Shown here: positions 35,883-57,850 of the stretch, one piece after another
Numbering within the stretch: the first letter of the stretch is position 1
How the letters are laid out: the number at the start of each line of letters is the position of its first letter
From: Schizochytrium sp. TIO01
Lineage: Eukaryota; Protista; Bigyra: Labyrinthulomycetes
Reading direction: 5' to 3'
NCBI GenBank assembly: GCA_004764695.1
Contig: SMSO01000006.1
Span: 1,317,859 to 1,381,858, forward strand
DNA: 64,000 bases
Notes under the pieces: generated by a model
Told to the model about the DNA's origin: nothing
Seen by the model: only the letters and a program-made list of their open reading frames with translations
The model's database searches: none
Position numbers and translations under genes: made by a program

Positions 35883-38800
35883 TTACAAGGGAATATTCTT
35901 TCCAGAAAGGTGAACAGCCCTTTCCAGGGGACCGTCCTCACCTTGTTTCCTATTCTTGTCTTTCGCTACCTTACGAACATACTTCTTGTCAATCTGTTGA
36001 GCCCATTCTTGCGCTTGAGCAGCAGCGCGGAATTGGTCTTCCATTGTGCGAAGATTTGCCTCGCGGCGGTCCACAGATGCTTGTTGGGCTGCAAGCGACT
36101 GAGCCTGAAGTAACTGTTGCTTACGTTCCCAAGCAAGGTGTGCCTCTTCGTTTTTTCGAGCCATTGCTTCTTGGGCCATAGCCCGAGCCATCTCTTTAAC
36201 TTCATCTCGGTGAATTCGTCTTTGACTATCAGTTCTGTCATGATCAGCAACCAACGAAGCATACTGACTCGTCATATGTTCGACGTCTTGATCCACCTCC
36301 TCAAGCCGGCGTTTAATATTATCCTGCACAATACGAACGTCTTGCTGCCATTCTTTGTTTTGCTTTCCTCCCTTTTGACGAGGTGTAGCTGGGGGCGCAG
36401 GCTGATGTGGCTTGTTCACCCCGCCCTTTGCAAATTGTTTGCCTTCATTTCCTTTGAAGACTCCTTCGGCATCTCGCTTCTCTTTCCCAATATCTACGTT
36501 TGTCGAGGCTCTCAGACCTGCAGCAGTAGCTCGTGGTTTTAGTGGATCCCTTCGAGGAACCCTGTCCAGCCAAGGCTGCGATGGTTCGGCAAGGAGCAGG
36601 GCTTCGTACAAAGTCTGATCAGGTAAACGTCGATTAGGGCGCTGTGAACCGCTTCTTCGCGCCCATCGGCGAATCTTACGTTGTTCGTCTCGCGTTGGTA
36701 ACCATCTTCGTTCACGAGCCATCTGCATCCACGGCCGTTCGGGGTGGATATCGAAGATTTGCTCAAATCGATTAGAGAATCGTCCTGAATTTTCGTATCC
36801 AAAGTTAACTTCGTCCAAGTCTGGAGGAAGTCCGTACTCGTTCAAGCCAATATCTTTGAGCCATCTATCAATTACGATTTGCTCGTCCTGAGACATCCAC
36901 ATTTTGGTTGGCGACTTTGGCCAATTGCCAAACCGCCGGCGCGACGGAGATCGCGGGGCTGGCGAAGCTCGTTTAGGAGAATCATCCATAGAAGACTCGC
37001 GATTTGAGCGAGAATAACCTTGATTTAAGTAAGCTACCCCATTTGGTTTTGTTGCTGTGGAATCTTCCACAGTGTCAACGTTTGACAATCGAGCATCACC
37101 CATACCTGGAATCTCAACAGTGGGGATTTCTTTTTCTAATTTTGTACCATTACCCCGACGTCGTTCAGGGTGGAACTCCTCACGAAAAGGTTTCCTGGAT
37201 ACACGTTTTGGTAATCCCTTTGGCGTCCTCTTCTGATTTGTAGTTCTAGCCTTTGAAGCGTCTTGCTCCGATTTCGTAGGCTCATGAACTGCAATGGCAC
37301 CACTTAAAAGAAAAAACCGACCAGCCTTGAAATCAGCGCTATCGTTCATTGCGAGTGAGTCAAAGACATCCATCTCCCAACCGCCACCAATACGAACACG
37401 AGTTTTGTTCATCACAGCTCTTACAGGTTCAACAGGAGCCTGGACTTTGACGAATTCTCCAGATGGTAAAACAGTTCCTAGTACACCCATGAAACAAAGT
37501 CGATAATAGCATTGATTGGACGGAGCATCAAGTCTTAAAGATACTGGAATCCCAACTTCGCCTTCTGATACCTTTTGCATAGACTCTACGTCGATCGAGC
37601 CTATATGAGTCCACGATTGATCACTCACTACAGCTCCAGGAAATGAGCTTACGGTTTCCGCCGAGGTCCCCTTCGTACTTGCATCTGTTTCGTTACTTTG
37701 CTGTTCGACGGCAAGTGGGGCATAGAACTGATGGCAGGTGCTTGTAGTTAAAGACCAGTTCACTTGATGAGGAGTATTCAACCGTTTTCGCAGCAACTCC
37801 TGGAGTCTGAGGCCGCCAACATCAGAAAATGTAGATCCTCGTATTTCAACATCAGTTGCAAGTAAGGTTGGCTCACTTCCGGAGATTCGCTCTGCTGCTC
37901 TTTTCTCCCCTTCTTGAGAACCTTTTTCAATCTCAAATTCATGGTGACGACCGTGTTGCCATACTCGCCCCTTGGCAGCAGACTTGTAAGCAGCACCGTT
38001 CAAAAGCTGAGCGCGTCGCTGAGCAAGACGCTCCTCTCGCTGGTTGTTTGAAATTGGTGCAACGTAAGCCAACAACCTACAATAAAGCTGAAGAACTAAG
38101 CGGCTTTTAGGGGTAGCGACAGGTGGTTTCTCTTGGCGTAAAATACGTATGTTGCCCATGCGAACCCCTGATTCGACCTCCCCGTCATCGTATCGAATTG
38201 TATAGCTTGTTTGCGCGTGATCTCCTCGATTCTCTTCAATTTTCATTATCTCTCCAGGGTACCACAGAGAGCCTCCACCGTACCTTACCTCAACAAGTGC
38301 ACCAACCTTCGCTTCAGCCATCGCTGGTGCTGCGCGACAAGCCTCTGTAAACTGCACGGCATCACCAGCTCCTTGAAGCAACATCCCTGGGGCATAACCT
38401 GAACACGCAGTGATGCTTTTGTTTGGCCCACTCAAATTCTTTTCATCATAGTCGGAGTCGGAGCCGGAGTCACTCTCCCAATGCTGCTCACTGGCAAGGC
38501 CTAGACCTTCAAGCATTGCAAGAGGGTCAACTCCATGTCTACGTCGATGCAAAAATGGTTGCAGAAAGTTGAAGAGATCCGATTCTCGAGCCTCGAGTCC
38601 AAGTTCATAAAGCTCATACGAAATTACTGACACAGGTACAGATCTTTGTCGCTCGTCTATTTTCTGCAGTAAAAGCTTTTCAAGCTGGCCCCGTTTCTTC
38701 TTCAAAAACATCTTGATGCGCCTATTCGGGTCTTGCTGTTCTTTTCCTTGTGCCCTGTAGACTTCATTCAAACGAATACGAGCCACTTCCGTGAGATCAT

Positions 38801-41800
38801 CAATGCATTGATTGACTTCGATGGTATCTGGGGCAAGAAAAATTTGCAACTCCTGAGAAGTAAGATCAAGCCTGAGCAGTAAGGCATCGCCCACACCAAA
38901 ACCATTCTTGCTGATTCGCGCAAAACGATTCATACTGCGCACACGCGATGCGGAATACCCACGACAAATCAGCTCCCCACGACTATTTACGCCAACAAAT
39001 TGATCTCGCCCGGAACGATCCACTGACGCGATACCCACGACGACATCATGGGACATGTGTTTAACAAAAACACGCCATACGTGGATTCCACCATCGAAGC
39101 TCGAGTCGCAACGAGCCAATTGAAAATTTGTCGGTATCTTAGTATCAGAAAACTTCGTAACAGACCCCGAAACACCTTTTGGGGTAGTACGACCCCTTTC
39201 ACTGCTTTCATTTTGTATTGGAACTTCCTCAATCCAATCAAGCGGAATAGATCTGATCTCGCCAGTGTTTTCGAAACGAACGTCATATGAACCATCTTTA
39301 TGATCGCATAATATCGACGCCTCATAAAGTGTCGCTCCTCCTCCATAGCGAACAAGGACATTGCTGTGCACACCTAGTTCGCGAGGTCCTGGCAAAGAGG
39401 GGATATTCTCAGATAAATCTGTTGTTTGTCCTTGCAAATTGACAAGTAAACTGGCCATGAAACCGTTGGCCGTGAAAGCCATATGAGTTGAGCTTAGAGC
39501 CTTAGAAAATACTGGATGATGAAACTCTGCGCGATTCATGCATTCGATGTAGAATCGTTTATAGTTGACACTCGACTTTCGACGGCTGTCTTTGATTCTT
39601 GATTGTAAAGTAAGGCGTAAAAGTCCTACATCAGCACTATCATACCCAAGAGCGAATAAAGATTCCTCGAATTCAAACAGAGTAAGTGTATCATCGTTTG
39701 TCTCGTCGCGAGACCGAAAGGTCTCTAAAACTGGCAACCCACTTCGAGCTGCCTGGCGAAGGAAGTCCATGACCCGCGCAAGCTCAGCTTCTATGGCCCC
39801 AGCAGATACTTTTGTACGCCCCGACGGCGATAAAGCCTGGAAATCCTCCGGTTTGTCAGTTATAAATCCTCCACTCGCCTTCGCCGGCAATTTTTCAGCG
39901 TTCTCATCTAGGTTCAGTCCACGAAGTACAACTTGAAATGCATCCGAAAGGGCCGGGCCCACATGAAGCCAGATGTCATGTTGGCGTGCAGCTTTTAGGT
40001 ACGTGCATGAGAGCTCGTTACTTTGCATCACAGCAGGGTCTGGATCTCCTGTTGTTGGCGCAGCAAGCCTTGCCTCGAAATAAGGGCCTGTACCCAGTGC
40101 CAACCAAGGTGGTTGTCTGACAGCCTCGATAGCAGCACGAAACTTTGTCAAGAGAGGGCCTCTGATGCGTAATTCCTGCTCAATCTCCTCATCACTTAAT
40201 TCTAAAAGTGTCTCGCCGTCAAGCGCGAGCGCCATAGCTTCTTCAATAGGTAATTCAAGACTAGACATTAACTGAACCACATCGGATGTTCCCCACTGGT
40301 TAATGGGCGCCTCGTTTGGACGAGGAAGCATTGTGTCATTCACTACAAGCCGCCGGTAGACACGATGATTGTGCGTTGCAGATGTGATATGAGTGTTGGC
40401 ATTGCCATGACGCGAGCGAGCTGAATAATGCAAGTACGCTGTACGAAAGAGCAGTGCCTGAAGAGCGATTTCGTTCTCCAGTCGGAGCTCTTCAAGAGCT
40501 TCCATAAGGTCAAGCTCAAGTAAAGCCTCTCCGTCAATACCTTGATGTTCGAAAGGTAAAGAGGGAAGGCCACATGCTGATGCAAACTTACTTACTTGCT
40601 TGACTGTCCATTCTTCTGGATCTCCATCACCTGCAACAAGACCAGGATCTAAGGCATCAACGCTAAGTAAACGAAGCAGTTCTCGTTTTACCTTGCGTGC
40701 GACGATGGTGCTACCCGTGCCAAGTACGGTAAGCATATCATGATCATTTCCAAGAGGGAAAACATAACATTCGGTCATACCCAAATGTGTTCCATGGCTA
40801 ATTCGACTTTGAAACCTAGTTAACCCGATGCTTTCGAGAAAATCCAAAACCCTAGACTGTGTCGAAAAAAACATAACGTTATTCAAACGTCCAAGAGCGT
40901 GCCGCGTGGCATTTTCTTCAACATTGCGTAGACGCTGAGCTTCTGCAGCCTCTTCTGCCCGTAGTGCTGCTTCCTCTGCCATGCGAGCGGCCGCCATTTC
41001 TGCTGCATGGATTCTCTTTGCTATCCGGAGTCTTTTTTCCATTGACTTTGCGGAGGTTGATGTAGATATATTTTGACGAGAATTCGAAGAGCTTCCTCGA
41101 AATTCTTCTATACTCGAGTTAGATGGTGAAACAGCAGTACCAACGGCTTGGTTAGAAGTTTCTTGTACAAATTTGGGAATAATGACGCGAGCTTTTCGAG
41201 CACAATAAACTTTTTCTTTGACTGCCGTGGCATTTCGTTGAATGAAACTCGCGTTATTCACACGAGCAGCATGTGCTCGCCGCTGGGCTTGCCATAAAGG
41301 TCCATGTGTCTCGATTTCTGACTCCACCTTGCATAGAATTGCTTCAACAGCATATCGTGCCACACTCTTTGCAGCACGACGAGTTTTTTCGGATTGTCGA
41401 GATCCAAATACTGCCTGCCAAGTCTGACGCTTTGCTTCAGCATTTTTATTTAAAGTGAGACCGGGTATTGCAGACCTTTTGATACCCAGGAATTCAAAAT
41501 AGTCAACCTGGCCATCTTTAGATTCGTCTAGAGTTTCTGTGAATTGACGAATCACCCTCGCGTCGAATTCCTCATGGTGCGCAAAGATATCAGAAATAGC
41601 AAGCTCAAACTCTTCAAGGCTGATGGTTCCGTTGTTGTCCATGTCAAAATGGCTGAAGACATCAGATGCTTTCACTCCACGTTTACCAGATTCCAGTAGA
41701 AAGCTTTTCAGTTCTCGGCGTAACTTTCGAACTTGCTGAACAATCTCCTCATCGCTTCGTGCATCTTTGGATACTGGAACTTCTGGGTTTTTTGCTGCAG

Positions 41801-44800
41801 ACCAATATCGAAGAAATGCGTTATAGTCTATGTGCTGATTACGATTCGATGATGTACTGCGAGCTGTGTCTCCCCCGTGCCATGGTATACCACCATTCAC
41901 GCGAGACATTAATTGGCGTAGTTGCATTTCGCTGCACTCAAACCCAAGCTCCATTAGAGCTCGGTGAAATTCCTCCCATGTCACTGAGCCATCTCCATTC
42001 GTGTCAAAGTATCGGAATGTTTCTTTCAATGGAATGTTCATACTCTCCGCGCTCGCGATAAACTCTTGTAAGTCAGCCTCGAGGGTTGCAATTGGATCAT
42101 CAATTACAGTATCACGAAGTTCCATTGAAGGACTTCCTGGTGACATTGGTGACATGGGACCTTGCCCTCCCGGACCATTACCCCCGTGTCTCTGGCTTTG
42201 ATGAGATTTACGAACAATAGCAGCTTGAATGAATTCAAGGTAGTGAATTTTACCATCATTTTGTAGATTTAAGACATCCAAGAGTTGCTTCATTTCTGAA
42301 GGATCGAGGCGAATGCCAAGTGCTGTCATTGCACACCGAAAGTCGCGTTGGGTAATGGTGTTACTTTGATCAAGGTCAAAGTGCTGGAACGGGTTCATTA
42401 CAGCGTGCCGATCAAGGCGACGGCGTGCAACTTGGAGTTGCGCCTTCTGCACGGCAGACCTTAATGCCGTGGCTACTTCAGCAGGCTCAACTTGTTTCAC
42501 AAACTCTTCATAGTCAACGAGCCCATCATTGTTTGCATCTAAATATCGCACAAGTTTCTCGAAATCTTGCTCTTGTAATTTTAAATCAAGTTTTCGCAGA
42601 ACTTGCAAAAATTCTACACGATCAATAACCCCATCTTGCCTATAATCAGCTTTCATAAACAGAGACTTTATTGAGAAAGCAGATGAAACTTTACCATCTA
42701 CTTTAGCTTCTATATGAGCTGTCTTGGGGCTCATTACATCCGAGCGATATTCATGACTCCTAGCTAACCCAAGTCGAATTCGCTTAATTATACGCAAAAG
42801 AGCTGCTTGCTCCTCTTCAACGCCAATCATTCTCAAGAAACTAGTGTAATCGATATTTCCATCAAGATGCGCAACACCGTACTCTCGCATGATGCTCTTT
42901 AGTTGCTGTTGAGAAAAGTGCATATTGAGCCGCAAAAGACCGGCTTCAAGTTTTGCCATACCTATTGAGCCTGTATTGTCATTATCAAAGAGACGGAAGC
43001 AGGATCTATCGTTCGAGCCACGGGCCTGAGCATCACGCAGCACTGTTCTAAGATTTGCTAAGAAATCTTTAATTTGAACTTTACCCAAATCATCGAACGA
43101 AGATGGAGAGGTTCCCATGACCTTTTGAAATTGTCCTATATCAATAAAGTTCCTTCCTGGAACTTGAAAGTACTTCATGAGGAGGTTGTTCTGTTGATCA
43201 GAGAGTTTAGTATTAATAAGTCTTTCAAGCCCATACTTAAATTCATCTGGTTTGATTAGCCCATCGCCGTCAAGATCAAAGTGAGCGAACGAATCTATGA
43301 CACTAACTGGATGTTTGGGATGATTTGCAGCAGCTTGGACGAGTTCTCGAAGGTGGTCGAGTATTTTTTCTGTGGAGTCAACAAGTTTCTCTTCACGTGA
43401 TGTACCTGGAATTACCGAGCGTGATGACGTCGGAGACATTAATTTAGATTCTTGCATAAGCACGCGGGAACTCCCTGGCACCATTGGGCTGGGCGGGCCA
43501 AAAGTCTTTACATGTTGCAGCATGTCAATTGGTAGATTGCCATTGCCCTGTGAAATCTCATGAAAAAGGAAGTGATACTTTACAAAAGTCTCCTTTTTTA
43601 CTTTATGCAGAAGGCGATACCCAATGGCTTTTTTCAGATCTTCTACAGAATAAACAAGATCCAATGATGCCAGAGCCTTGAGAGCATCGGAAAGGCTAAT
43701 GAGGCCCTTTTTGCTTGCATCATACTTTTCAAAAGCCTCACGAACATGTTTGAGACGACCCTGAGCGTACGCAAGAGAACCCCTAAACTTGGCGCGAAGC
43801 TCTAGGCGGTCTTCAATCGCCTTTTGAAATGCATTCTTCTCTATGAGCCCCACCTGAGGCCCTTGGAACTTTTTCATAATCATTTGGGTTGTGCGAAAGC
43901 TGATAGTGATAGGAAACCCGAGCTTAATGAGGGCATTTCGAAGCTCGATGGTACTCATCAAATTATCATTTGTCTCATCAAACACTTTAAAGCACGTTTC
44001 TGCTGGAACGTTCTCTGCAAGTGCGTTTGCTATGATATCAACGAGATGATCAAAGGTGCTCTCAGCAACTTCATTTTCCTCACTTGGCTCCAGGGAATCA
44101 AGCCAAACATCCGGACAAAGGAGCGCAAGCAATAAAGAGTATTTTACTGTATGCTGCATGATTATATCTTTGTGCAGCGTACCATATGCCTGCTCAATAA
44201 CTTTAATCGCCTGAACTTCATCGCGATCGACTCGGGAAAGATCAAATCCTAACTCTAAAAGAAGCTCTACATAATGCTCGATAGGAAGTCGGCACTGATC
44301 AGATGAGTCTATGACCTCGAGCAAGGCCCGCACATTCAAACCGTCACGCCGTGCGTTAGCGAAAACTTCGCTTGTTTCTCGAAGAATCTGCTCAAATTTG
44401 GGATAAGGAGGGTTTCGGGATGGGAAGAATGCAGCATTTTGAACTTGAAGCAAAACAGCTGGCCTCTGTATAACAGCATTATAGAAGGATTGAAAGTTGA
44501 TTTTTTGCTGTTGTAAATGTTCTGTAGATTCAAACATGTCCATCAACATATGTACTTGCCGCGTATTAAGGACAGTTCCCAATTTGGCAATGCCAGCAGC
44601 AAATTCTTTCCGGTCAATTAAGCCGTCGCCATCTTTGTCAAAGTGCCCGAAGGCATTTTCAGGCTGAACTTTACCTTTCTCAATTCCACTTTGAATTGTA
44701 TAACGAAGCCTTTCGAGAGCAGCTAGAGACATACAATTGTCTCTATCTTGCTCTTTATCATCCCGAGACCCGTCTTTCCACACATCTGGAGCTAAAGAGA

Positions 44801-45947
44801 TTAGAAATTTGCGATACATGATTTTCCCATCCACAAGAGATTGCGGTGATCTTTTATTGATAATGTATGATAATGTTGCAGGAGTCAGATTTCGAACGCC
44901 AAGGCTTGCCATAACTTGAGCAAAATTATCCACAGGAATAAAATCGTCAAATTTGAGATCAAAGGATTCAAAAAGGATTCGGAAATCAATTTGATGCTCA
45001 AGCGCGAGCCTTACAGCCGTGAGCATATCCTTAACAAGACGGTCAACCAGATCATCTGAGATGTCTTGCATTTCATTAGTCGGTAGCATGGGCTGTTTTA
45101 GTTTCTTCTTTTGCTGCTTTGTAATAGTTTGAGCGTTCTTCTTAGGTGCTTTTCTTTGCGTCTGAAGTTTCGAAAGCTGCTCATTGGAAACATTTGCCAG
45201 ACGTAATAGTTCCTCGAAAAGATCAAAAGAGCATATTTGACGTGGAGAAAGTGATGATGTTGATTCAGTAACGGCTGAATACTCTGAAGTCGTCATGGTG
45301 TTATTCTTGAGTTTTTGCAAAAGCTTGGGCACGTCGGAAACTACAAGGGGAGACACACTTTCAAAGACATTGTGAACTAATTTGTGTCGAGCTTCCATAA
45401 AGGTATGGCTTTCATCACTGTGCAAATTCGTTTCATCGCCTAAAAGTTGGAAATACGCCGCTAGTGATGGGTTCGATATCAGCTTCTCCCAACTGATGAA
45501 CTCATTGGTAGAGTTCAATAAATCCTGTTGCCAAAATATTTGAAGCATATCTTCTTTGGGAGGAATAGGCCACTGAGGCTGCATCTCCTTCAAGGCCTTG
45601 ATAAACTGATCAATGAAACAATGCTGATCACCAATATATCCTCGTAAAGTCTTGTCTACAGCGTGTCCTGAATTTGCGTGTCCCTTCAAAATGGCTAAGA
45701 TGTCATCCCAAATCCGTTTGCTTTCTCCTAAGGGTAATATGTCGCTACCGAGAACTTCAAACTTCTCCTCGGCTGGGCTAAAACTATCAGCGAAAGTAGT
45801 TTCAACAAGAAAAGAGGCTTTGCTGCCTTCTTTGTCTTTTATCTCAGCGATTCTCACTTTCACATATTCACGGGATCGGGCTGCGATAGCAGACTTGCGA
45901 GCGTCCCTACACTCTACAACATCACCCCGGGTAAATCGAGTGTTCAT
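35883..45947 (-). CDS. Giant multi-EF-hand protein with SAM, Tudor/Agenet-like and SPRY-like domains (~3350 aa)
   Basis: 10-kb uninterrupted ORF. EF loops DKDGDGLIDRKE, DLDGDGLIKPDE, DANNDGLVDYEE, DTNGDGSVTWEE, DMDNNGTISLEE; SAM-like EEWTVKQV..IDGEALLEL; Tudor-like VEVRYGGGSLWYPG..YDDGEVE; SPRY-like GGIHVWRV..GFGVGDALLLRLDL; first ATG at 45947. Confidence 0.92.
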   Translation of the reverse strand: MNTRFTRGDVVECRDARKSAIAARSREYVKVRIAEIKDKEGSKASFLVETTFADSFSPAEEKFEVLGSDILPLGESKRIWDDILAILKGHANSGHAVDKTLRGYIGDQHCFIDQFIKALKEMQPQWPIPPKEDMLQIFWQQDLLNSTNEFISWEKLISNPSLAAYFQLLGDETNLHSDESHTFMEARHKLVHNVFESVSPLVVSDVPKLLQKLKNNTMTTSEYSAVTESTSSLSPRQICSFDLFEELLRLANVSNEQLSKLQTQRKAPKKNAQTITKQQKKKLKQPMLPTNEMQDISDDLVDRLVKDMLTAVRLALEHQIDFRILFESFDLKFDDFIPVDNFAQVMASLGVRNLTPATLSYIINKRSPQSLVDGKIMYRKFLISLAPDVWKDGSRDDKEQDRDNCMSLAALERLRYTIQSGIEKGKVQPENAFGHFDKDGDGLIDRKEFAAGIAKLGTVLNTRQVHMLMDMFESTEHLQQQKINFQSFYNAVIQRPAVLLQVQNAAFFPSRNPPYPKFEQILRETSEVFANARRDGLNVRALLEVIDSSDQCRLPIEHYVELLLELGFDLSRVDRDEVQAIKVIEQAYGTLHKDIIMQHTVKYSLLLALLCPDVWLDSLEPSEENEVAESTFDHLVDIIANALAENVPAETCFKVFDETNDNLMSTIELRNALIKLGFPITISFRTTQMIMKKFQGPQVGLIEKNAFQKAIEDRLELRAKFRGSLAYAQGRLKHVREAFEKYDASKKGLISLSDALKALASLDLVYSVEDLKKAIGYRLLHKVKKETFVKYHFLFHEISQGNGNLPIDMLQHVKTFGPPSPMVPGSSRVLMQESKLMSPTSSRSVIPGTSREEKLVDSTEKILDHLRELVQAAANHPKHPVSVIDSFAHFDLDGDGLIKPDEFKYGLERLINTKLSDQQNNLLMKYFQVPGRNFIDIGQFQKVMGTSPSSFDDLGKVQIKDFLANLRTVLRDAQARGSNDRSCFRLFDNDNTGSIGMAKLEAGLLRLNMHFSQQQLKSIMREYGVAHLDGNIDYTSFLRMIGVEEEQAALLRIIKRIRLGLARSHEYRSDVMSPKTAHIEAKVDGKVSSAFSIKSLFMKADYRQDGVIDRVEFLQVLRKLDLKLQEQDFEKLVRYLDANNDGLVDYEEFVKQVEPAEVATALRSAVQKAQLQVARRRLDRHAVMNPFQHFDLDQSNTITQRDFRCAMTALGIRLDPSEMKQLLDVLNLQNDGKIHYLEFIQAAIVRKSHQSQRHGGNGPGGQGPMSPMSPGSPSMELRDTVIDDPIATLEADLQEFIASAESMNIPLKETFRYFDTNGDGSVTWEEFHRALMELGFECSEMQLRQLMSRVNGGIPWHGGDTARSTSSNRNQHIDYNAFLRYWSAAKNPEVPVSKDARSDEEIVQQVRKLRRELKSFLLESGKRGVKASDVFSHFDMDNNGTISLEEFELAISDIFAHHEEFDARVIRQFTETLDESKDGQVDYFEFLGIKRSAIPGLTLNKNAEAKRQTWQAVFGSRQSEKTRRAAKSVARYAVEAILCKVESEIETHGPLWQAQRRAHAARVNNASFIQRNATAVKEKVYCARKARVIIPKFVQETSNQAVGTAVSPSNSSIEEFRGSSSNSRQNISTSTSAKSMEKRLRIAKRIHAAEMAAARMAEEAALRAEEAAEAQRLRNVEENATRHALGRLNNVMFFSTQSRVLDFLESIGLTRFQSRISHGTHLGMTECYVFPLGNDHDMLTVLGTGSTIVARKVKRELLRLLSVDALDPGLVAGDGDPEEWTVKQVSKFASACGLPSLPFEHQGIDGEALLELDLMEALEELRLENEIALQALLFRTAYLHYSARSRHGNANTHITSATHNHRVYRRLVVNDTMLPRPNEAPINQWGTSDVVQLMSSLELPIEEAMALALDGETLLELSDEEIEQELRIRGPLLTKFRAAIEAVRQPPWLALGTGPYFEARLAAPTTGDPDPAVMQSNELSCTYLKAARQHDIWLHVGPALSDAFQVVLRGLNLDENAEKLPAKASGGFITDKPEDFQALSPSGRTKVSAGAIEAELARVMDFLRQAARSGLPVLETFRSRDETNDDTLTLFEFEESLFALGYDSADVGLLRLTLQSRIKDSRRKSSVNYKRFYIECMNRAEFHHPVFSKALSSTHMAFTANGFMASLLVNLQGQTTDLSENIPSLPGPRELGVHSNVLVRYGGGATLYEASILCDHKDGSYDVRFENTGEIRSIPLDWIEEVPIQNESSERGRTTPKGVSGSVTKFSDTKIPTNFQLARCDSSFDGGIHVWRVFVKHMSHDVVVGIASVDRSGRDQFVGVNSRGELICRGYSASRVRSMNRFARISKNGFGVGDALLLRLDLTSQELQIFLAPDTIEVNQCIDDLTEVARIRLNEVYRAQGKEQQDPNRRIKMFLKKKRGQLEKLLLQKIDERQRSVPVSVISYELYELGLEARESDLFNFLQPFLHRRRHGVDPLAMLEGLGLASEQHWESDSGSDSDYDEKNLSGPNKSITACSGYAPGMLLQGAGDAVQFTEACRAAPAMAEAKVGALVEVRYGGGSLWYPGEIMKIEENRGDHAQTSYTIRYDDGEVESGVRMGNIRILRQEKPPVATPKSRLVLQLYCRLLAYVAPISNNQREERLAQRRAQLLNGAAYKSAAKGRVWQHGRHHEFEIEKGSQEGEKRAAERISGSEPTLLATDVEIRGSTFSDVGGLRLQELLRKRLNTPHQVNWSLTTSTCHQFYAPLAVEQQSNETDASTKGTSAETVSSFPGAVVSDQSWTHIGSIDVESMQKVSEGEVGIPVSLRLDAPSNQCYYRLCFMGVLGTVLPSGEFVKVQAPVEPVRAVMNKTRVRIGGGWEMDVFDSLAMNDSADFKAGRFFLLSGAIAVHEPTKSEQDASKARTTNQKRTPKGLPKRVSRKPFREEFHPERRRGNGTKLEKEIPTVEIPGMGDARLSNVDTVEDSTATKPNGVAYLNQGYSRSNRESSMDDSPKRASPAPRSPSRRRFGNWPKSPTKMWMSQDEQIVIDRWLKDIGLNEYGLPPDLDEVNFGYENSGRFSNRFEQIFDIHPERPWMQMARERRWLPTRDEQRKIRRWARRSGSQRPNRRLPDQTLYEALLLAEPSQPWLDRVPRRDPLKPRATAAGLRASTNVDIGKEKRDAEGVFKGNEGKQFAKGGVNKPHQPAPPATPRQKGGKQNKEWQQDVRIVQDNIKRRLEEVDQDVEHMTSQYASLVADHDRTDSQRRIHRDEVKEMARAMAQEAMARKNEEAHLAWERKQQLLQAQSLAAQQASVDRREANLRTMEDQFRAAAQAQEWAQQIDKKYVRKVAKDKNRKQGEDGPLERAVHLSGKNIPL

Positions 45948-46819
45948 AGTGATACAGCAGCTGAAAGTACTAGGGTTTGAGGCCAGCTTGGTCCTCACCT
46001 TCGCGCTTGCCAGAAGCCGCCTCTTTCAGTCTCTCTGTTCAGTCTGTAAGTTAAGCTTGCTAAACCAGGCTCTCCTCTCGACACAATAGACGACGTAGCC
46101 TTGGTTGCTGCTGCTACAGCCTTGCGCGGCTTTGGCGACGTCAGGCACCAGCAGACCACTATTGCACGAGAGCAAGACAAGCTCCCGTGACCTCTTTTGC
46201 AAATGTAGCGGCCTTTAGACAACAAAACACAATAATATTCACTAGTTCACAGTATTAGCACCGGGAGTCTTTTAATAGCAGGTTCTTTTTCACGTTAAAG
46301 GCCCATTTGCAATCGATTCTGCGGATCGCCTCTCACGGCTGTCTTTTGCCCGAAAACTCGGGCTCGAGCCCAGGAAGGTCCCATGACCAGCCTGAGAGCA
46401 AAGAGGTGTTACAGTGTAGTGCTCAACGGTAACATTTATATAGAAGGGAAGATAGAAGGAATTTAAAAGAAAAAAGAAAAAAGAAAAAAGGCTTAAAATA
46501 CACAGCAAGTAAAGGAGAAATTCTAGTCATTGAAGAACCAAAGAAACCAAAAGGCGCCAATCGGGCTCTAAGTACTGTCGAAGAGGAACCTAGTTTAAGC
46601 ACCGATTTATTTACGCTAAACAAAAACTTGATGCTTGCGATTAGCTTTAGGGTATAGCTCGATAAGTGCAGTGACTCGTTCGCAAAGGACCGCAAAAGCG
46701 ATTGGAACTTGGCAGCACAGCAAGTCGACCAGTCTTGGCGGGTTGCAAGACTTGAAGAAGCAAAAGAAAATCCAAAAGGCGAAAGAAGTTGACAGCGACA
46801 GGCGAGTGGTGCTGTAAAT

Positions 46820-51669: not shown

Positions 51670-54600
51670 ACTGGTGCTATATAGTGACTAGCTAGGTCCT
51701 AGCAGGTATTTCTTCTCTTCTTACTTTGTGTTTTTGCTTCGTTTCGCGTTCATATACTATGACGCCTATAAAGTATAGGCCTATAACTTCTTTTTGCTAA
51801 TGAAAAAAAAATGAAGTGCGTATTAGAAGAAAATATCAGCAAAGGTCTATTCAAGTTGACTTTTGACTAATGAGCGTTACTGAGAGGAAGAGAAAAATCG
51901 AGCAGACTATTTTTTTCCTTTAAGAATTAACAATTCTATTTTTAATCAAAAATATATATATTTTTTAAAAAATATAAACCTAAATATAAATTGGACTACC
52001 ACTAAGATAGTCAAACAGACAAATCAACATATCAATGTACAGTAATAGTAGTAGATGATAGGCAGGCCTACCTAGCTATCGGGTATACCAGCACAAAGAA
52101 CTCGAAGCAATGCAAAGAGATCGAAGTCAATTGTCAATGAAATTCGACAGTGATGGATCGACCTTTGACCTGACGAAGTAAGTATCTATGTATGGTTGAC
52201 ATTGAGGGTGTCGATTGCGTGTCCAGCTGTACTTCTTTGTGTCTGCAGTTGTATTTATGTACAACATTTTGAACTGACCTGCGAGAGCCTGCCTTTCTAG
52301 GATCAATATTTTAGTTTATTTTTCTTTAATGAAGAAACCTTGGATAAATTGATGTATTTTCAACCCCTTCTATAACTCTGGGCCCAAGCAGGGACCAGGC
52401 TTGTCGATTGTCGCTTTCGGAGCAGCGTCTGCTCAACCCATCCTTTTTCGCACTCCCAGTGAGCAAACTTCTACAGTGCCTTCGAACGCGAGTGCATTCC
52501 AGTGCCCTTCATAAGAGGAATAGTACAAACAAAACAATGAAACGAAACGAAACGACCGATTTCCGGCTTTTCAAAGTTTAAGAAGAAAGTAGTACATAGT
52601 TTAAGTAGGTATAGTACATGTTAATAATATATAGGACCTTTCTACCCACACTAGAGCAAACCCAGAATGAATGGAAAACCAGAGAAGTTCTCGCTACCAT
52701 TTGACAAATATCTACTCAACTAACTTTGTAGATCGAGCTGCATTCCTCATGCATTTTCAGCCTGAATGATTCCAGTTTTGAATTCTTTTCCTGGATACTC
52801 CGACCTTGCTCTTAAAAGCTAAGGCCGTACACCTTGGCGTGCTCCACGACGGTTTGCTGTTGTTGCTCACTTATGAGTAGTATAGCGTGCTGCTCTAGGA
52901 TGAAGTCCAAAAGAACAGTTTTGCGTTTTGTGTTGTAGTTCTGCAGTAACTATGTACATGTAGAAAGTCAAGTTGGGCATGCCGCGTGGCGCTGTGATTG
53001 CAGGCGTGGGTCGAGACCAGGTATTCGTGGTATTCGTCTGAAGGGATTGAGGCTTACTGGATAGTTTGTACATGCTTTAGAGGCCTACGTGTATTTGTTT
53101 TTTGTTTGTTTGGTTGGATGGTTCATTTGCTTCCTACGCGAGAATTGAAACACAGAATCACTGCCCCTCCCTTCCCAGCCATAGCTAGTTTTCTTCCCTC
53201 TAGGCACCTGCGTTCCAGGCATAACCCGCACCCTACTAGACTCACGATTCGTGATTTGCAATGCATCGCGAGCCATGATTTGTTGTCATAAGTCATAAGT
53301 CATGAAATTCATGTCATCAGCCATGATTCGCAATTCGTTTGAAGTTTGCAATTCATTCATAATTCACGATTCGCCACTTGCAATTGGTCCTCAGCATTCA
53401 TTCTGAGTTAGGACTTAACTTCAATGACCATGGGCTTCTCTCTCGATTTCCATCAAAACCTCACCTCAGTTTTGTCGCTCGTTTTTACCCGTTCGCTGAC
53501 GTACCTGAGCAGTTTCCACAAACACTTGAGCACGATCAGGTCAACTCCAAGCGCTCCGGTCGAGGTCAAGGCCTTTGTCCGAATGCCTCAGCAGACTGTT
53601 TTGTACGCGAAGGAATGAAGTTACTCAGCGGACAAATTTCACAGTGATTGCGATTCTGTATAACTACTTTCTATAAATACGCCTCTTCAGCCGCTCTTTG
53701 TTGTACTGTTTTCCTTCCTATATCACATTTGCGCGCACCCCACAAGTGAGATATATAGCCGAGATAAAGGGCTGAAAAACCTTACGGGCCGAGCGCTATG
53801 GGCCTCCTATGCTTAACAGTAGCAATGTGATGGATGGGGAACAGAACGACTGGCGATTGGAACAGGGAAAGGTTGTGAATGTGGGTGGCAAAGGATCGAA
53901 AAGCAACAATGAAGATTGATTGCTCTGGGGTTCTCAGAAGCCTGTCGGTATGCACTCACGAAATGCACGCCGCTTGAAAGACGTTGGCATGATCGATCTA
54001 ATGAAAAACCAAGTAACTTTGATCGAGACATGAAAAGAAGCTTAGCTGTTGCAGCATGTAGCTAGTTCATTATTGTATTATTTGTTTACCTCAAACTGTC
54101 ATCAATTATTATTGCTCTGTTGAATGGGTCAGTGAGGTCGCTTCTGCTGTAGTAAAAGACGAAAGTGAAATAAAGGATACGAAGAGAAACGATCAGAAAC
54201 CCAAACAATGCCATCCTGAGAGATCTCAAAGTTGCGGACGGCAATTGTAAAAGGCTTTGCCAAACCCTTTCAGAAGTAATGATGCAGGCAGGAATAGACA
54301 ATACATACTGACGGTGCCTCAATACATCTATTTATATTGTAGGCCTAGTACTATGTCATTGTTTATTAATTTTAAAATTAACTACTTTTAGAATTGATAA
54401 TTTCTCAAAATATAGAAAACAAAATTAGAAAAATTGATGAACTTGGACGATAAGAAACAGAAATAAAAACTTGTTTTCCCTCCATCATAGGCATAGGGGT
54501 TCCTATTGGTTGGCTAGGTACCCTCGCTGCCCTCTCAAAAGGAAAAGAACTTGAAAGAACTTTTCACAGTTCCTAGCAATTGCGGACTTCGGGCCAAAGA

Positions 54601-54904
54601 GATGACCCAACTCGAAGGTCTTTCTTTGCTGTTGTTGTCTCCAGACGGTTTGCTTTTGGAGAAGAGGAGACGATATTGCGTTGCTCTATCTTAGTGCTGA
54701 TATCCCAGTCGTGACCTCTCTCATTTCCTGCTTCCTTCCTTTTTTCAAGCTAGTGTTTATTGAGTAAGTCAGTTCCCTTGATTGATTGCTTGATTGATTG
54801 CTTACTTGCTTTAAGCTTCTGCTATCGCATGTACCATAGGTAGTTGTTATTTGTCAAACGTTTTTATTTCTATTTTCATTTAAAAAGCACATAGGTACAG
54901 GTAC

Positions 54905-55020
54905 TCTTAGATTTTAAACTACAAAATTTGCAAAACTTGCATTTCATAGCAGGTCTAAGACCCGATCGCGGATTAGTTAGACTAACCCGCGACTCAATGA
55001 AATGATTTTTTTTAAATCAT
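54905..55020 (-). ncRNA. Candidate Fanzor omegaRNA scaffold (right end)
   Basis: Nested stems directly after the nuclease stop: CAUUUCAU/AUGAAAUG, UCGCGGGUUAGU-cua-ACUAAUCCGCGA (G-U pair on this strand), GGGUC-uua-GACCU, and UCUUAG complementary to a distal CUAAGA (pseudoknot-like). Confidence 0.7.
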
Positions 55021-56817
55021 GTCCTTGGATAGGTAGCGTAAAAGGATGCCTCTTGCGGCATGGACATCACGGTCTGCTACATGGTTGCACTTGGGATTAG
55101 GGCATTGGAAAATCTTGGATGCCCCGAGGTTATGGTGGAGGGTACCACACTCATTGCATGTTTTGGAAGTGTAACTTTCTTGGCAAAGAACAAGCTTGCA
55201 CCACGGGAACATCTCAGCCTTATGAATGAGAGCCTGGCGGAACCCAAAATGGGACCAACGACACATCATTCGAATAGACTTCTTGGAGATCCGTCGCTCC
55301 ATCCTCCTGCTCATCTTAGAGGTTTCGAATTTGGGCAGGAGAATAACACGATAGTTTTCACAAAGCCAAAGCGCGAGCTTGCGGTGAATCTCAGTGATCT
55401 TGTTCTTGATCTTGAGTTGGGCGCGATAGAAGGCGCGCTTCAAGGGGGTGTTGAAATTGTCTTTATCACTGGATGCAGTTTTCTTTTTATCAATGCTGCT
55501 TTGGATCTTATCAACGCGGCGACAGAGATAGAATATGGTTCTAAAATCTTTCCCTGTGCCCCATTCAATGGCGCGGCCATCGGCGTCATACATCGTCTGA
55601 AACGAGCGAACACCCGGGTCTAGAGCAATGACACCATGGTGCGCCTTGGGTGCCTGGTCCATTGGACGCTTTTTTTCTTCTCGTAAGAAGCAGAAGTAGA
55701 CATGCCCAAGGCGATTCATTTGCACACGCATGGCGTTCGAAATCTGGTCGGGGAACTCTTCTTTACGTGTTCGGAATTCTTTTAGAAAGTTGGAGGTCTT
55801 TGATTTCTTCGCATTCCAGGTACGTGCATTCACTTCGAAAATCTGTGATTCATCACGCTTGGTCCGAAACTTATAAAAAGATTGCTCATGGACTTTCTTT
55901 TGTACAGCGAGCTCTTCGTTTTTGGCTCGTCCCGAGTTAATAGCCTTGAAGAAATCCAGAATCCCGGAATCACGGATAGCCTGTGGGACCTCGCGAACCC
56001 ATTTAGGAGCACCATTACTTTCTTTAGATCGAACGACTTTCTTTTCTCCATAGAGGGCACTATGCGTTTGGGGATTCCCATCTTCATCTACTAAATCCTG
56101 CTTCGTCTTACGATCCTTTTTGATGCACGCTTCTTGATGCAATTTGATGGCTTCTTTCTCGCCCTTCGCCATGTCTCGGTGAAACGCAACGCCAATATTG
56201 TAGGCTCTTCTAGTGACACCAAACCATTTAAGCAACTGTGTACGTTGATCTTTATTAGGATATACCCTAACCTTTCTGGCACGGACAAGGTTATATTCTT
56301 TCTTGATGGTCTTGCGCGCCTTCGTGCGAGCTCGCTTCTTCCTCGCTGCGTCGTCGCCGTCTATTTTGCGCTGCTCGTTTTCCGTGATGCGATGCCACAA
56401 AGACGGTGATGATTCCGAGGAGGTCTTTGGTGAAGGTGTCTGAGTCTCCGGCATGTGCATCTTGGCCGTGTACCACGAGTTTGACATTTTATCTTTCGAA
56501 AAGGTGTTCCAAGAGGTCGACTGCGATTCGCGCAAGTCGGTCGCGGTGCATGACCACAACTTGGCCGATTCCGCCGCGGTCACAGGCGTCCAGTAGGGAG
56601 CACAGACCTTGGCGTTTGAAATTGACCCCGCTACCGATGTCTTTGTAGACGGCGGAAGCATCTGGGTAGGCGCGCTGGAGATCGCCAACCTGGCGTTCGA
56701 GGTCCTCCTTTTGCTTGACCGAGGACACTCTGGCGTAGATAACGGTACATCCAGAGCTGCGTTGCTCGCGGCCGGTGGAACCGCAATCAAAGATGCGCTC
56801 AACATCGTCGCTGGCAT
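55012..56817 (-). CDS. tnpB: Fanzor2 / IS607-TnpB-family RNA-guided endonuclease
   Basis: Open frame (601 aa from the first ATG at 56817; real start uncertain). OrfB HTH RKVRVYPNKDQR..WFGVTRRAYN; RuvC-I IALDPGVRSF; ILLPKFE (Pro at the canonical Glu site); ESYTSKTCNECG..CPNPKC zinc finger; RuvC-III DRDVHAARGI. Confidence 0.93.
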   Translation of the reverse strand: MPATMLSASLIAVPPAASNAALDVPLSTPECPRSSKRRTSNARLAISSAPTQMLPPSTKTSVAGSISNAKVCAPYWTPVTAAESAKLWSCTATDLRESQSTSWNTFSKDKMSNSWYTAKMHMPETQTPSPKTSSESSPSLWHRITENEQRKIDGDDAARKKRARTKARKTIKKEYNLVRARKVRVYPNKDQRTQLLKWFGVTRRAYNIGVAFHRDMAKGEKEAIKLHQEACIKKDRKTKQDLVDEDGNPQTHSALYGEKKVVRSKESNGAPKWVREVPQAIRDSGILDFFKAINSGRAKNEELAVQKKVHEQSFYKFRTKRDESQIFEVNARTWNAKKSKTSNFLKEFRTRKEEFPDQISNAMRVQMNRLGHVYFCFLREEKKRPMDQAPKAHHGVIALDPGVRSFQTMYDADGRAIEWGTGKDFRTIFYLCRRVDKIQSSIDKKKTASSDKDNFNTPLKRAFYRAQLKIKNKITEIHRKLALWLCENYRVILLPKFETSKMSRRMERRISKKSIRMMCRWSHFGFRQALIHKAEMFPWCKLVLCQESYTSKTCNECGTLHHNLGASKIFQCPNPKCNHVADRDVHAARGILLRYLSKDMI

Positions 56818-56914
56818 AGATGCGCTTGCCTCCGGGGAAGCGCGCGAAGCGCACGCGTCCGCCGTCGGCCCAGCCCCGAAGGGCGCTTGCTGAGACCCCA
56901 AACTTCCTATTGCA
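56291..56914 (-). pseudogene. tnpA: IS607-family serine recombinase/transposase TnpA, disrupted
   Basis: MerR-like HTH (KFGVSASALRGWADGG..FPGGKRIY), catalytic YARVSS, DLERQ, DIGSGVNFKRQGL, HRDRLAR, DLLGIITVF. In-frame TAA at 56489-56491; no in-frame ATG upstream of the HTH. Confidence 0.88.
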
Positions 56915-57083
56915 GAGTAGCCTGAGCTGTGAAGCGTGGAGAGGTAGTCTGACAAGGATGACGAACTCAGGAGAAAGAGAAAGAGGATGATATATGAGTT
57001 ATTGGGGTTTCAGGTCTGGATACAGGCAGGAATGAATGTATGATGTCAGTCCGATACACAGGATGTGTCGGACATGAGGGCTT

Positions 57084-57110
57084 GGTTAGGTTAGGTTAGG
57101 TTAGGTTAGA
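57084..57110. repeat. (GGTTA)5 pentamer array at the putative element left end
   Basis: ggttaggttaggttaggttaggttaga seen directly. Confidence 0.8.
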
Positions 57111-57476
57111 CAGTAGCTGTATATTACTTCAATACTCCCCCCGCAAATCACGCGTCAGCACCTGAAGCATCAAGTAAGCGACTAGCGTGTTTCCAATGAG
57201 ATGGTGAAAGAACTTTGCTGGTTTGTATTCGAGGTTTGCTCCACTTGCAGTGTTTGGAGCTTGTCGGTTCCTCGGCCTCCCCATTTTCTTATCTAACCTC
57301 TACTTCTTATTAATAATCTAACTAAACATAATATATGGTTAATATGAAACAATCACATCGAAATATAAGTTATCGAACTTTTAACGTTTTTTGTTGTACT
57401 GCATTAGGATATATACCATACACAAAATTATGCATAACAAAAACGTTTTTCTATAATCTATAACTATATCATGTTT

Positions 57477-57541
57477 GTATGTATGTATGTATGTATGTAT
57501 GTATGTATGTATGTATGTATGTATGTATGTATGTATGTATG

Positions 57542-57571
<30 letters not shown>
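57477..57571. repeat. (GTAT)n microsatellite
   Basis: Seen directly. Confidence 0.97.
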
Positions 57572-57572
<1 letters not shown>

Positions 57573-57793
57573 TTATATAAACAAGGAGCCTTCGATGTCC
57601 GTCTGTATAACTGCATTGGCCCATTGAAAAACGAAAGAAAGACGAAAAAACTTGACTTGACCTGACTTGAGTTGAACACTCAATATATATGTGTGTATCT
57701 CATCGCCTGAGTTCAGAATAAAGCACGCCATATCAGGCACCATCGCAGCTCGAGTCGCTGACATCGTCCAGGGCAGTGAAAAACTAAACCTCG

Positions 57794-57850
57794 TAGGTAG
57801 ATAGGTAGGTAGGTAGGTAGGTAGGTAGGTAGGTAGGTATAGGTACCTAC
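57794..57850. repeat. (GGTA)n microsatellite ending in a TAGGTACCTA palindrome
   Basis: Seen directly. Confidence 0.9.

Follow-up and report, generated by a model that had tools for sequence, protein, structure and literature searches.

The window analysed here is a stretch of 64,000 nucleotides from the organism deposited as Schizochytrium sp. TIO01 (contig SMSO01000006.1, positions 1,317,859 to 1,381,858 of the forward strand). It lies 1.37 Mb into a contig (C5) of a 64-Mb assembly of 37 contigs, and all positions below are window positions. Positions 54904–57395, on the minus strand, hold a single copy of an IS607-type Fanzor2 transposon of ∼2.2 kb (2,197 bp, plus a nested insertion of 295 bp), and we regard it as very likely that an IS607-family DNA transposon with Fanzor2, resident in the nuclear genome of Aurantiochytrium, is represented at this locus. 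Read along the minus strand, the element consists of its left end and 5′ untranslated region (57285–57395, delimited by copy alignment); the first part of the transposase gene tnpA (57203–57284), with the ATG at 57284–57282, the first 27 codons and the start of a MerR-like helix–turn–helix (HTH); the nested insertion (56908–57202); the second part of tnpA (56291–56907), with the serine-recombinase catalytic domain and the C-terminus; and the Fanzor2 frame (55012–56817 from its first ATG, 601 amino acids plus stop). The N-terminal extension of this frame (56817 to ∼56283) lies over tnpA in the +1 frame and is followed by the TnpB-like core (56283 to 55015), and a candidate omegaRNA scaffold runs to the right end (54904–55029). 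Alignment of copies from the same genome defines the right end sharply at 54904, in the sequence …CTAAGAG, and places the left end near 57395–57398; the left boundary is uncertain by 3 nt because TAC stands at both junctions (57398–57396 and 54903–54901). The extent given in the initial annotation of this DNA, 54907–57110, was therefore too short.

The nuclease is encoded by an uninterrupted TnpB-like open reading frame (ORF) on the minus strand (55012–56955), which comprises 647 codons from a TTG and 601 from the first ATG, at 56817. Profile searches, as the initial annotation had recommended, gave matches to Pfam Cas12f1-like_TNB (E = 3.2e-13), Pfam HTH_OrfB_IS605 (E = 9.3e-09) and NCBIfam guided_TnpB, the last over positions 2–388 of 389 (E = 1.9e-25). 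A sequence search of the PDB gave mimivirus L79/ApmFz2 (PDB code 9b0l) as the top hit (E = 1.8e-18). The catalytic triad of ApmFz2, D324/E467/D501, has been defined experimentally (PMC11832414) and aligns residue for residue with Asp, Glu and Asp of the window protein, namely the RuvC-I Asp of ALDPG (55618–55620), the relocated RuvC-II Glu (55177–55179) and the RuvC-III Asp, the second D of ADRD (55066–55068). The DPG motif lies in ALDPGV at 55620–55612. The relocated Glu, a defining feature of the group (PMC10711439), sits six residues before the first CxxC (E-SYTSKT-CNEC), and the canonical RuvC-II position is taken by the Pro of LLPKF, aligned with a Gly of ApmFz2. The zinc finger reads CNEC-x14-CPNPKC (55087–55158), in keeping with the Cas12f1-like_TNB match. 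The initial annotation had described the uninterrupted frame, the three acidic residues, a CxxC..Cx4C zinc finger and a rearranged RuvC-II, and every one of these readings stands. In an AlphaFold model built with 16 homologues the core has a predicted local distance difference test (pLDDT) score of 70–90, and the N-terminus is mostly disordered (below 50 for most of residues 1–182). Foldseek ranked 9b0l first for this model (E = 1.4e-16) and ISDra2 TnpB (PDB code 8h1j) second, with the Fanzor1 protein SpuFz at rank 31. These features, as read from the sequence, support the assignment of the locus as a Fanzor2 in an IS607-type element in every respect except the strict zinc-finger pattern considered below.

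In a tree of 76 TnpB/Fanzor proteins, which was built without a curated Fanzor1/Fanzor2 reference set, the window protein groups with full support with the product of an MMETSP transcript, a Durusdinium protein and an intron-bearing metagenomic gene. This group is nested in a clade with EukProt and giant-virus sequences that adjoins a cyanobacterial IS607 clade. Grouping with IS200/605 TnpB, the result that the initial annotation had named as speaking against a Fanzor, was not seen; the relatives are eukaryotic and viral. The combination of DPG and relocated Glu is common to all groups of the tree, and has been described for Fanzors and pro-Fanzors (PMC10711439). Fanzor2 has been known from IS607-like elements of eukaryotes and their viruses since 2013 (PMC3627910), and RNA-guided nuclease activity has been demonstrated for Fanzor2 enzymes (PMC10432273, PMC10530073). 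The Aurantiochytrium element belongs to this already known Fanzor2–IS607 type. Its host lineage is uncharacterised, as had been supposed: no paper tying Fanzor to thraustochytrids was found in the literature searched, which did not extend to the supplementary tables of the Fanzor census; one of the two papers there that name both Fanzor and Aurantiochytrium deals with a green-alga virus. One metagenomic relative (L051:2014-4308, Ga0209390_10020585) lacks tnpA, has a diverged N-terminal extension and shows an apparent spliceosomal intron of ∼165 nt between the segments YPNGQQKQ and GVTRRAYN; it may be a tnpA-less or domesticated Fanzor2 of another eukaryote.

A second frame in the window (56489–56854) matches Pfam Resolvase (E = 4.5e-16), and the tnpA fragment scores 99.7 bits on NCBIfam transpos_IS607 (cut-off 110), so that the upstream IS607 serine recombinase proposed initially is real. 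Intact sister copies encode a TnpA of 232 residues with a MerR-like HTH and a serine-recombinase domain; that of sister copy L006 scores 143.1 bits on the same model (NF033518, cut-off 110) and matches Pfam Resolvase and, weakly, MerR_1. The phrase 'transposase remnant' is apt for the window copy, in which tnpA bears two lesions, the 295-bp insertion that splits the HTH and an in-frame TAA at 56491–56489, where intact copies have AAA. The change that makes the TAA is not silent in the Fanzor frame, in which it replaces Glu by Asp. Because its own TnpA has been lost through these two lesions, the window copy must have moved in trans. Judged by gene content, the Fanzor2–IS607 family is nevertheless autonomous, since sister copies, unlike the window copy, keep an intact TnpA.

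The nested segment at 56908–57202 is an unrelated short repeat that contains (CCTAA)5 and is absent from most copies. It is a foreign insertion, because most copies join 57203 straight to 56907; same-genome copies match 57393–57203 joined directly to 56907–54904, and the joint that skips the 295 bp also appears in DNA runs X1 and X7. Neither inverted repeats nor a duplication are evident for this repeat at 56908–57202. At least eight solo copies of it (228–295 bp, 96–99% identity) occur on other contigs of the same genome. The transposon itself has the end structure expected of IS607, with subterminal direct repeats (ATTTCGAT occurs twice in the left end) and no terminal inverted repeats; alignment of the left end with the inverted right end scores 13, compared with 8.5 ± 1.5 for shuffles (maximum 17). 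A long (ATAC)n microsatellite lies ∼70 bp outside the left end (57467–57584), and the run reads appear to be cut there.

The genomic setting is eukaryotic. The ORF of an adjacent cyclic GMP-dependent protein kinase (PKG) is 97% identical to a protein of MMETSP0960, labelled 'Aurant…', and 56% identical to one from Mucochytrium, a thraustochytrid. The header of the MMETSP entry carries TAXON_ID=87120, which NCBI assigns to the fungus Rhizopogon burlinghamii, at odds with its ORGANISM field 'Aurant…'. By the ORGANISM field and the Mucochytrium match, the host is Aurantiochytrium, a thraustochytrid, and the placement of the element among eukaryotic host genes made in the initial annotation is borne out by this neighbour. 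DNA searches of the assembly itself, which the initial annotation had called for in order to count copies, returned at least 20 copies at 91–100% identity, together with more diverged ones, on at least 12 large contigs and among host genes. A protein search of the genome returned 16 full-length, stop-free Fanzor matches (90–100% identity) and dozens of decayed relics. The location in a eukaryotic or eukaryotic-virus genome by which Fanzor2 is in part defined is evident here from the host gene neighbour, the dispersed copies and the finding of both empty and occupied alleles.

Bacterial or viral contamination, or a chimeric assembly, would account for the close TnpA relatives in cyanobacteria and on giant-virus contigs, but we consider it vanishingly improbable. 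Copies are spread over at least 12 large contigs among host genes, the neighbouring gene is 97% identical to an Aurantiochytrium protein, occupied and empty alleles come from independent sequencing studies, and old decayed copies show long residence. Intact, near-identical copies coexist with decayed relics, which indicates both long residence and recent activity of the resident transposon. Beside the young family, decayed Fanzor2 fragments at 29–60% identity and with many stops are scattered across many contigs; such relics suggest repeated waves, or a very long residence, of IS607/Fanzor2 in this genome.

Mobility is recorded in the copies and in public data. Two subfamilies can be distinguished, A, which includes the window copy and is 97–99% identical internally, and B, with identities of up to 99.8%. 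The window copy and two others (L002 and L003) are full copies that share the tnpA-breaking insertion and have unrelated flanks on both sides; a fourth (L004) has the same insertion, an unrelated left flank and a truncated 3′ end, and a further partial copy lies at C13:5455967. Since copies that share the insertion have unrelated flanks, they represent a tnpA-defective derivative that was mobilized in trans. The window stretch is contained in public runs of 11 studies, and assembled contigs of four runs were compared with 54500–57800. A contig of DNA run X7 crosses an empty site, with …54893 plus 16 nt joined to 57396…, and DNA run X1 skips about the same span. In the orientation of the element the empty allele reads …GCAG-TAC-CTGTACC… and the occupied allele …GCAG-TAC-[element]-TAC-CTGTACC…. 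As empty and occupied alleles occur in different runs, the insertion is polymorphic between strains; these alleles from independent studies also dispose of the concern, raised initially, that the flanks might be chimeric.

The nuclease gene is both maintained and transcribed. In the Fanzor-only region the ratio of nonsynonymous to synonymous substitution rates (dN/dS) between the subfamilies is 0.2–0.3, which indicates that the nuclease has been under purifying selection while the element lineages diversified. The MMETSP transcript encodes a product of 601 amino acids that is 98% identical to the window protein, and an oligo-dT RNA-sequencing run (X17) yielded contigs on the element. In run X15, whose RNA nature is a guess, the summed contig depth over 54833–57274 is 3.5e4–1.2e5, compared with 8.7 on the flank; in DNA runs the depth on the element is only 10–40-fold above that of the flank. 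The family may be very highly transcribed under some condition, at a level that contig depth in X15 cannot settle. With intact frames, purifying selection, transcription and recent mobility behind it, the window protein is a likely active programmable nuclease, as first proposed.

Whether this copy contributes to the activity of its family is a separate matter. It may be a silent passenger, the family being active through other copies while the nested insertion and the dead tnpA disturb its Fanzor2 output: the 295-bp insertion lies between the 5′ end of the element and the Fanzor ATG and contains ATG triplets, tnpA bears two lesions, and contig-based RNA data cannot assign transcripts to single copies. 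We find this doubtful, although by no means negligible, because the Fanzor frame and 3′ region of the window copy are intact and 98–99% identical to those of sister copies, because the MMETSP product carries the Asp that marks TAA-bearing variants and because the insertion is shared by copies that have moved to at least four places in the genome.

The two genes of the element are nested. The Fanzor frame is already open in the left-end region and contains tnpA in its entirety, in the +1 relation, so that its first ∼190 codons overlie tnpA. In complete copies the Fanzor start follows the tnpA ATG by 124–172 nt, and the next two or three ATGs after that of tnpA are all in the Fanzor frame. Homologues of ∼45% identity keep conserved N-terminal extensions, and in a metagenomic relative of 42% identity tnpA is intact and its +1 frame stop-free. 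Among the nearest TnpA relatives fetched, nesting (an overlap of at least 400 nt in +1) was found at 38 of the 51 viral loci and 50 of the 57 bacterial loci that could be assessed, the latter mostly cyanobacterial. Judged from these sequences, the nesting is not an accident of one family. The nested loci include L052, L065/L067, L081, L103 and most of L067–L226, and giant-virus contigs of 368,683 and 1,021,348 bp, the former with three nested tnpA/Fanzor copies; across them the ATGs of tnpA and Fanzor/TnpB are often only 4–73 nt apart. IS607 ORFs have been said to 'often overlap' (PMC6188088); beyond this remark, nesting is unmentioned in the Fanzor literature searched.

An open frame need not be a translated one, and the true Fanzor start could be a Met further in, close to where tnpA ends (MSNSW…, ∼493 amino acids), with the extension untranslated and the open +1 frame a by-product. 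The AlphaFold confidence below 50 over most of residues 1–182 would fit such a start. It is nonetheless improbable in view of the coding evidence. Synonymous reshuffling leads one to expect 13.3 stops in the +1 frame, with a minimum of 4 in 5000 trials, and the frame is stop-free in the family and in the 42%-identical relative, as well as open in the viral and bacterial majorities given above. Within the genome, divergence of the overlap is slower by a factor of 3.6 than that of the Fanzor-only part, relatives without tnpA retain the Trp-containing motifs of the extension, and the N-terminal extension of ApmFz2 is structured and functional (PMC11832414). The idea that the nesting arose in adaptation to single-cistron translation in eukaryotes, through leaky scanning, was considered and rejected, because the same nesting is present in most of the assessable bacterial loci. 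Leaky scanning may still be the route by which both proteins are made in the protist, given the run of Fanzor-frame ATGs after that of tnpA. Taken together, we suggest tentatively, and with rather less than even confidence, that the N-terminal domain of Fanzor2 (RuvC-R and thumb in ApmFz2) overprints tnpA in a dual-coding module of ∼0.5 kb conserved from cyanobacteria through giant viruses to eukaryotes, and that the Aurantiochytrium family is currently mobile and autonomous.

The structured 3′ end noted initially is also confirmed: compared with shuffles, z is −6.6 for the fold of the terminal 126 nt and −3.9 for that of the terminal 257 nt. The predicted fold comprises, in order, a hairpin over the stop codon, a GC-rich hairpin of 13 bp, a short hairpin with a CUUAG loop and a terminal hairpin, and closes with an A/U-rich tail that ends in CTAAGAG. 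Metagenomic relatives are only 55–60% identical in the C-terminal protein region, yet show the same order of hairpins and a CUUAG-type loop; the sequence of their long stem is entirely different and the terminal CTAAG(A/G)G is kept. When 13 3′ regions were aligned with plain MAFFT, RNAalifold found hardly any consensus structure. A covariance model (R1) recovered old copies from the host genome and, among the metagenomic relatives, one (L053) where the structure was expected (E = 6e-4); it matched none of the viral or bacterial loci, and a search of Rfam gave no match for the 3′ region. By its fold and its conserved layout, the structured 3′ end is real and conserved, and its designation as a candidate omegaRNA (54904–55029) is a well-grounded one.

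If the guide starts directly after CTAAGAG, as in TnpB and Fanzor, the predicted native guide would be the flank at 54884–54903, and the empty allele would offer CAG followed by guide-matching sequence, an arrangement like that of a target-adjacent motif (TAM). The CAG of the left flank (57399–57401) is therefore our candidate TAM. In 14 of 19 copies a CAG precedes the left-end core by 5–6 nt, and in 15 of 19 by 3–8 nt; the empty site has it as well. Among copies that are 98–99% identical, the first 3–6 nt after the flank CAG (57394–57398; L002–L020) are hypervariable in sequence and length. In 5 of 17 copies, which is above chance, the dinucleotide after CAG is identical to the one that opens the right flank; no fixed crossover dinucleotide and no fixed target-site duplication can be derived from the 17 junction pairs. 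The sole verified empty site has TAC at both junctions.

The anatomy of the element, its family membership, its copy number, its insertion polymorphism, the purifying selection on the nuclease and its transcription were all observed here. RNA binding, the identity of the TAM, cleavage and a homing role we infer, and they would combine as follows. Complete copies encode two proteins on one strand, the 232-residue TnpA and a Fanzor2 of ∼600 residues, whose frame crosses all of tnpA in +1 before entering the TnpB-like core. TnpA, as a serine recombinase with a MerR-type HTH, would excise and insert the double-stranded element, which has no inverted repeats. The last ∼125 nt, which share the transcript of the gene, would form the omegaRNA scaffold, and read-through into flanking DNA would supply the guide. 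By analogy with TnpB and the characterized Fanzor2 enzymes, the Fanzor2–omegaRNA complex would then recognize the short motif to the left of the insertion (CAG) together with the guide-matching flank, a combination presented by the empty donor or allelic site; a cut there, followed by homologous repair from an occupied copy, would restore the element (retention or homing). The window copy, unable to make TnpA, must have moved in trans; its Fanzor2 frame and 3′ RNA region are intact.

Several observations weigh against this account. The guided_TnpB score, 90 bits, is under the curated cut-off of 100 bits. CPNPKC, the second zinc pair, has the form Cx4C; it does not fit the strict regular expression of PMC10711439 and matches only a relaxed pattern. 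As some relatives in the alignment have CxxC and others a longer form at this pair, we regard Cx4C as a variant and not as grounds for exclusion from Fanzor2. RNAalifold on eight copies from the same genome gives 17 pairs, only four of them with a compensatory change, and of four metagenomic relatives the covariance model failed to find three. The left-end junction varies among copies in a way that a clean 2-bp serine-recombinase crossover does not explain. The nested insertion adds AUGs upstream of the Fanzor start and may lower translation. Finally, the run data are assembled contigs, from which neither RNA ends nor RNA abundance can be read.

Retention of the protein might also reflect some function besides RNA-guided cutting; one example is the regulation of transposition, an idea formerly put forward for TnpB. 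In work cited in PMC6188088, TnpB is dispensable for IS607 transposition and is reported to be a negative regulator. We judge such a role very improbable, as all intact copies, and relatives too, conserve the catalytic triad and the zinc finger, the conserved structured 3′ end is present and the Fanzor2 enzymes tested are RNA-guided nucleases (PMC10432273, PMC10530073). On the available sequence evidence, the Fanzor2–IS607 element is genuine and probably functional.

Fanzors were shown to be RNA-guided nucleases in 2023, and the service that they render to their elements inside eukaryotic cells is still untested. The Fanzor2 enzymes characterized so far are mostly those of giant viruses or of animals in which manipulation is difficult. 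Aurantiochytrium is a fast-growing, cultured, industrial protist, and the family described here retains intact transposase and nuclease genes, near-identical young copies and at least one insertion that is polymorphic among strains, which allows excision, re-insertion and the dependence of retention on the nuclease to be measured in the host itself. If the family is indeed mobile and autonomous, the native role of Fanzor, be it homing or retention, is directly testable. The family also supplies a compact candidate nuclease for genome editing (∼600 residues or shorter) with a predicted short CAG motif. The nested arrangement of tnpA and Fanzor, if it is indeed undescribed, would explain the origin of the Fanzor2-specific N-terminal domain; this coding overlap deserves a follow-up of its own, and the main value of the family is as a native experimental system. 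Elsewhere in the window, a single open frame of 3,371 codons occupies 35883–45998 on the minus strand.

Among known systems, ApmFz2 (mimivirus L79, from an ISvMimi-type IS607 element; PDB code 9b0l) is the best match to the window protein in both sequence and fold. The two have in common the catalytic triad with relocated Glu, the DPG motif, an IS607 TnpA partner, an N-terminal extension that ends in a basic stretch before the WED domain, a structured 3′ RNA and a multi-copy distribution. They differ in that identity is only ∼18–25% and in that one resides in a giant virus and the other on the chromosome of a cellular protist; the extension is longer in the window protein (∼180–225 residues, compared with 130), its second zinc pair is Cx4C and its predicted TAM, by analogy, is CAG, whereas that of ApmFz2 is GGG. 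The Chlorovirus A625R-like IS607 transposases are viral and distant, and the Durusdinium homologue (46% identity) is named 'Putative transposase A625R' by one source. In Helicobacter pylori IS607 and CboIStron, as in the window family, TnpA is a serine recombinase with an N-terminal HTH, inverted repeats are absent and subterminal direct repeats are present. A short motif there serves both TnpA integration and the TnpB TAM; it is G-rich (GG or TGGG), in contrast to the CAG of the left flank and the heterogeneous junction seen here. Cyanobacterial pro-Fanzor IS607 TnpB proteins (PMC10711439) carry the same DPG/relocated-Glu signature, their TnpA is related at 36–44% identity and, just as in the window family, the extended nuclease gene (tnpB) encloses tnpA in the +1 relation, but they are prokaryotic and form a separate clade in the tree. 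NlovFz2, MmeFz2, DpFNuc and BaFNuc, which are demonstrated RNA-guided nucleases (PMC10432273, PMC10530073), resemble the window locus as multi-copy eukaryotic Fanzor2 loci with disordered N-termini and 3′ omegaRNAs. Mollusc Fanzor2 elements have target-site duplications and degenerate inverted repeats (PMC10711439), whereas the window family has no clear inverted repeats. Unlike the characterized cellular Fanzor2 elements, the Aurantiochytrium family keeps an intact IS607 TnpA in its sister copies.

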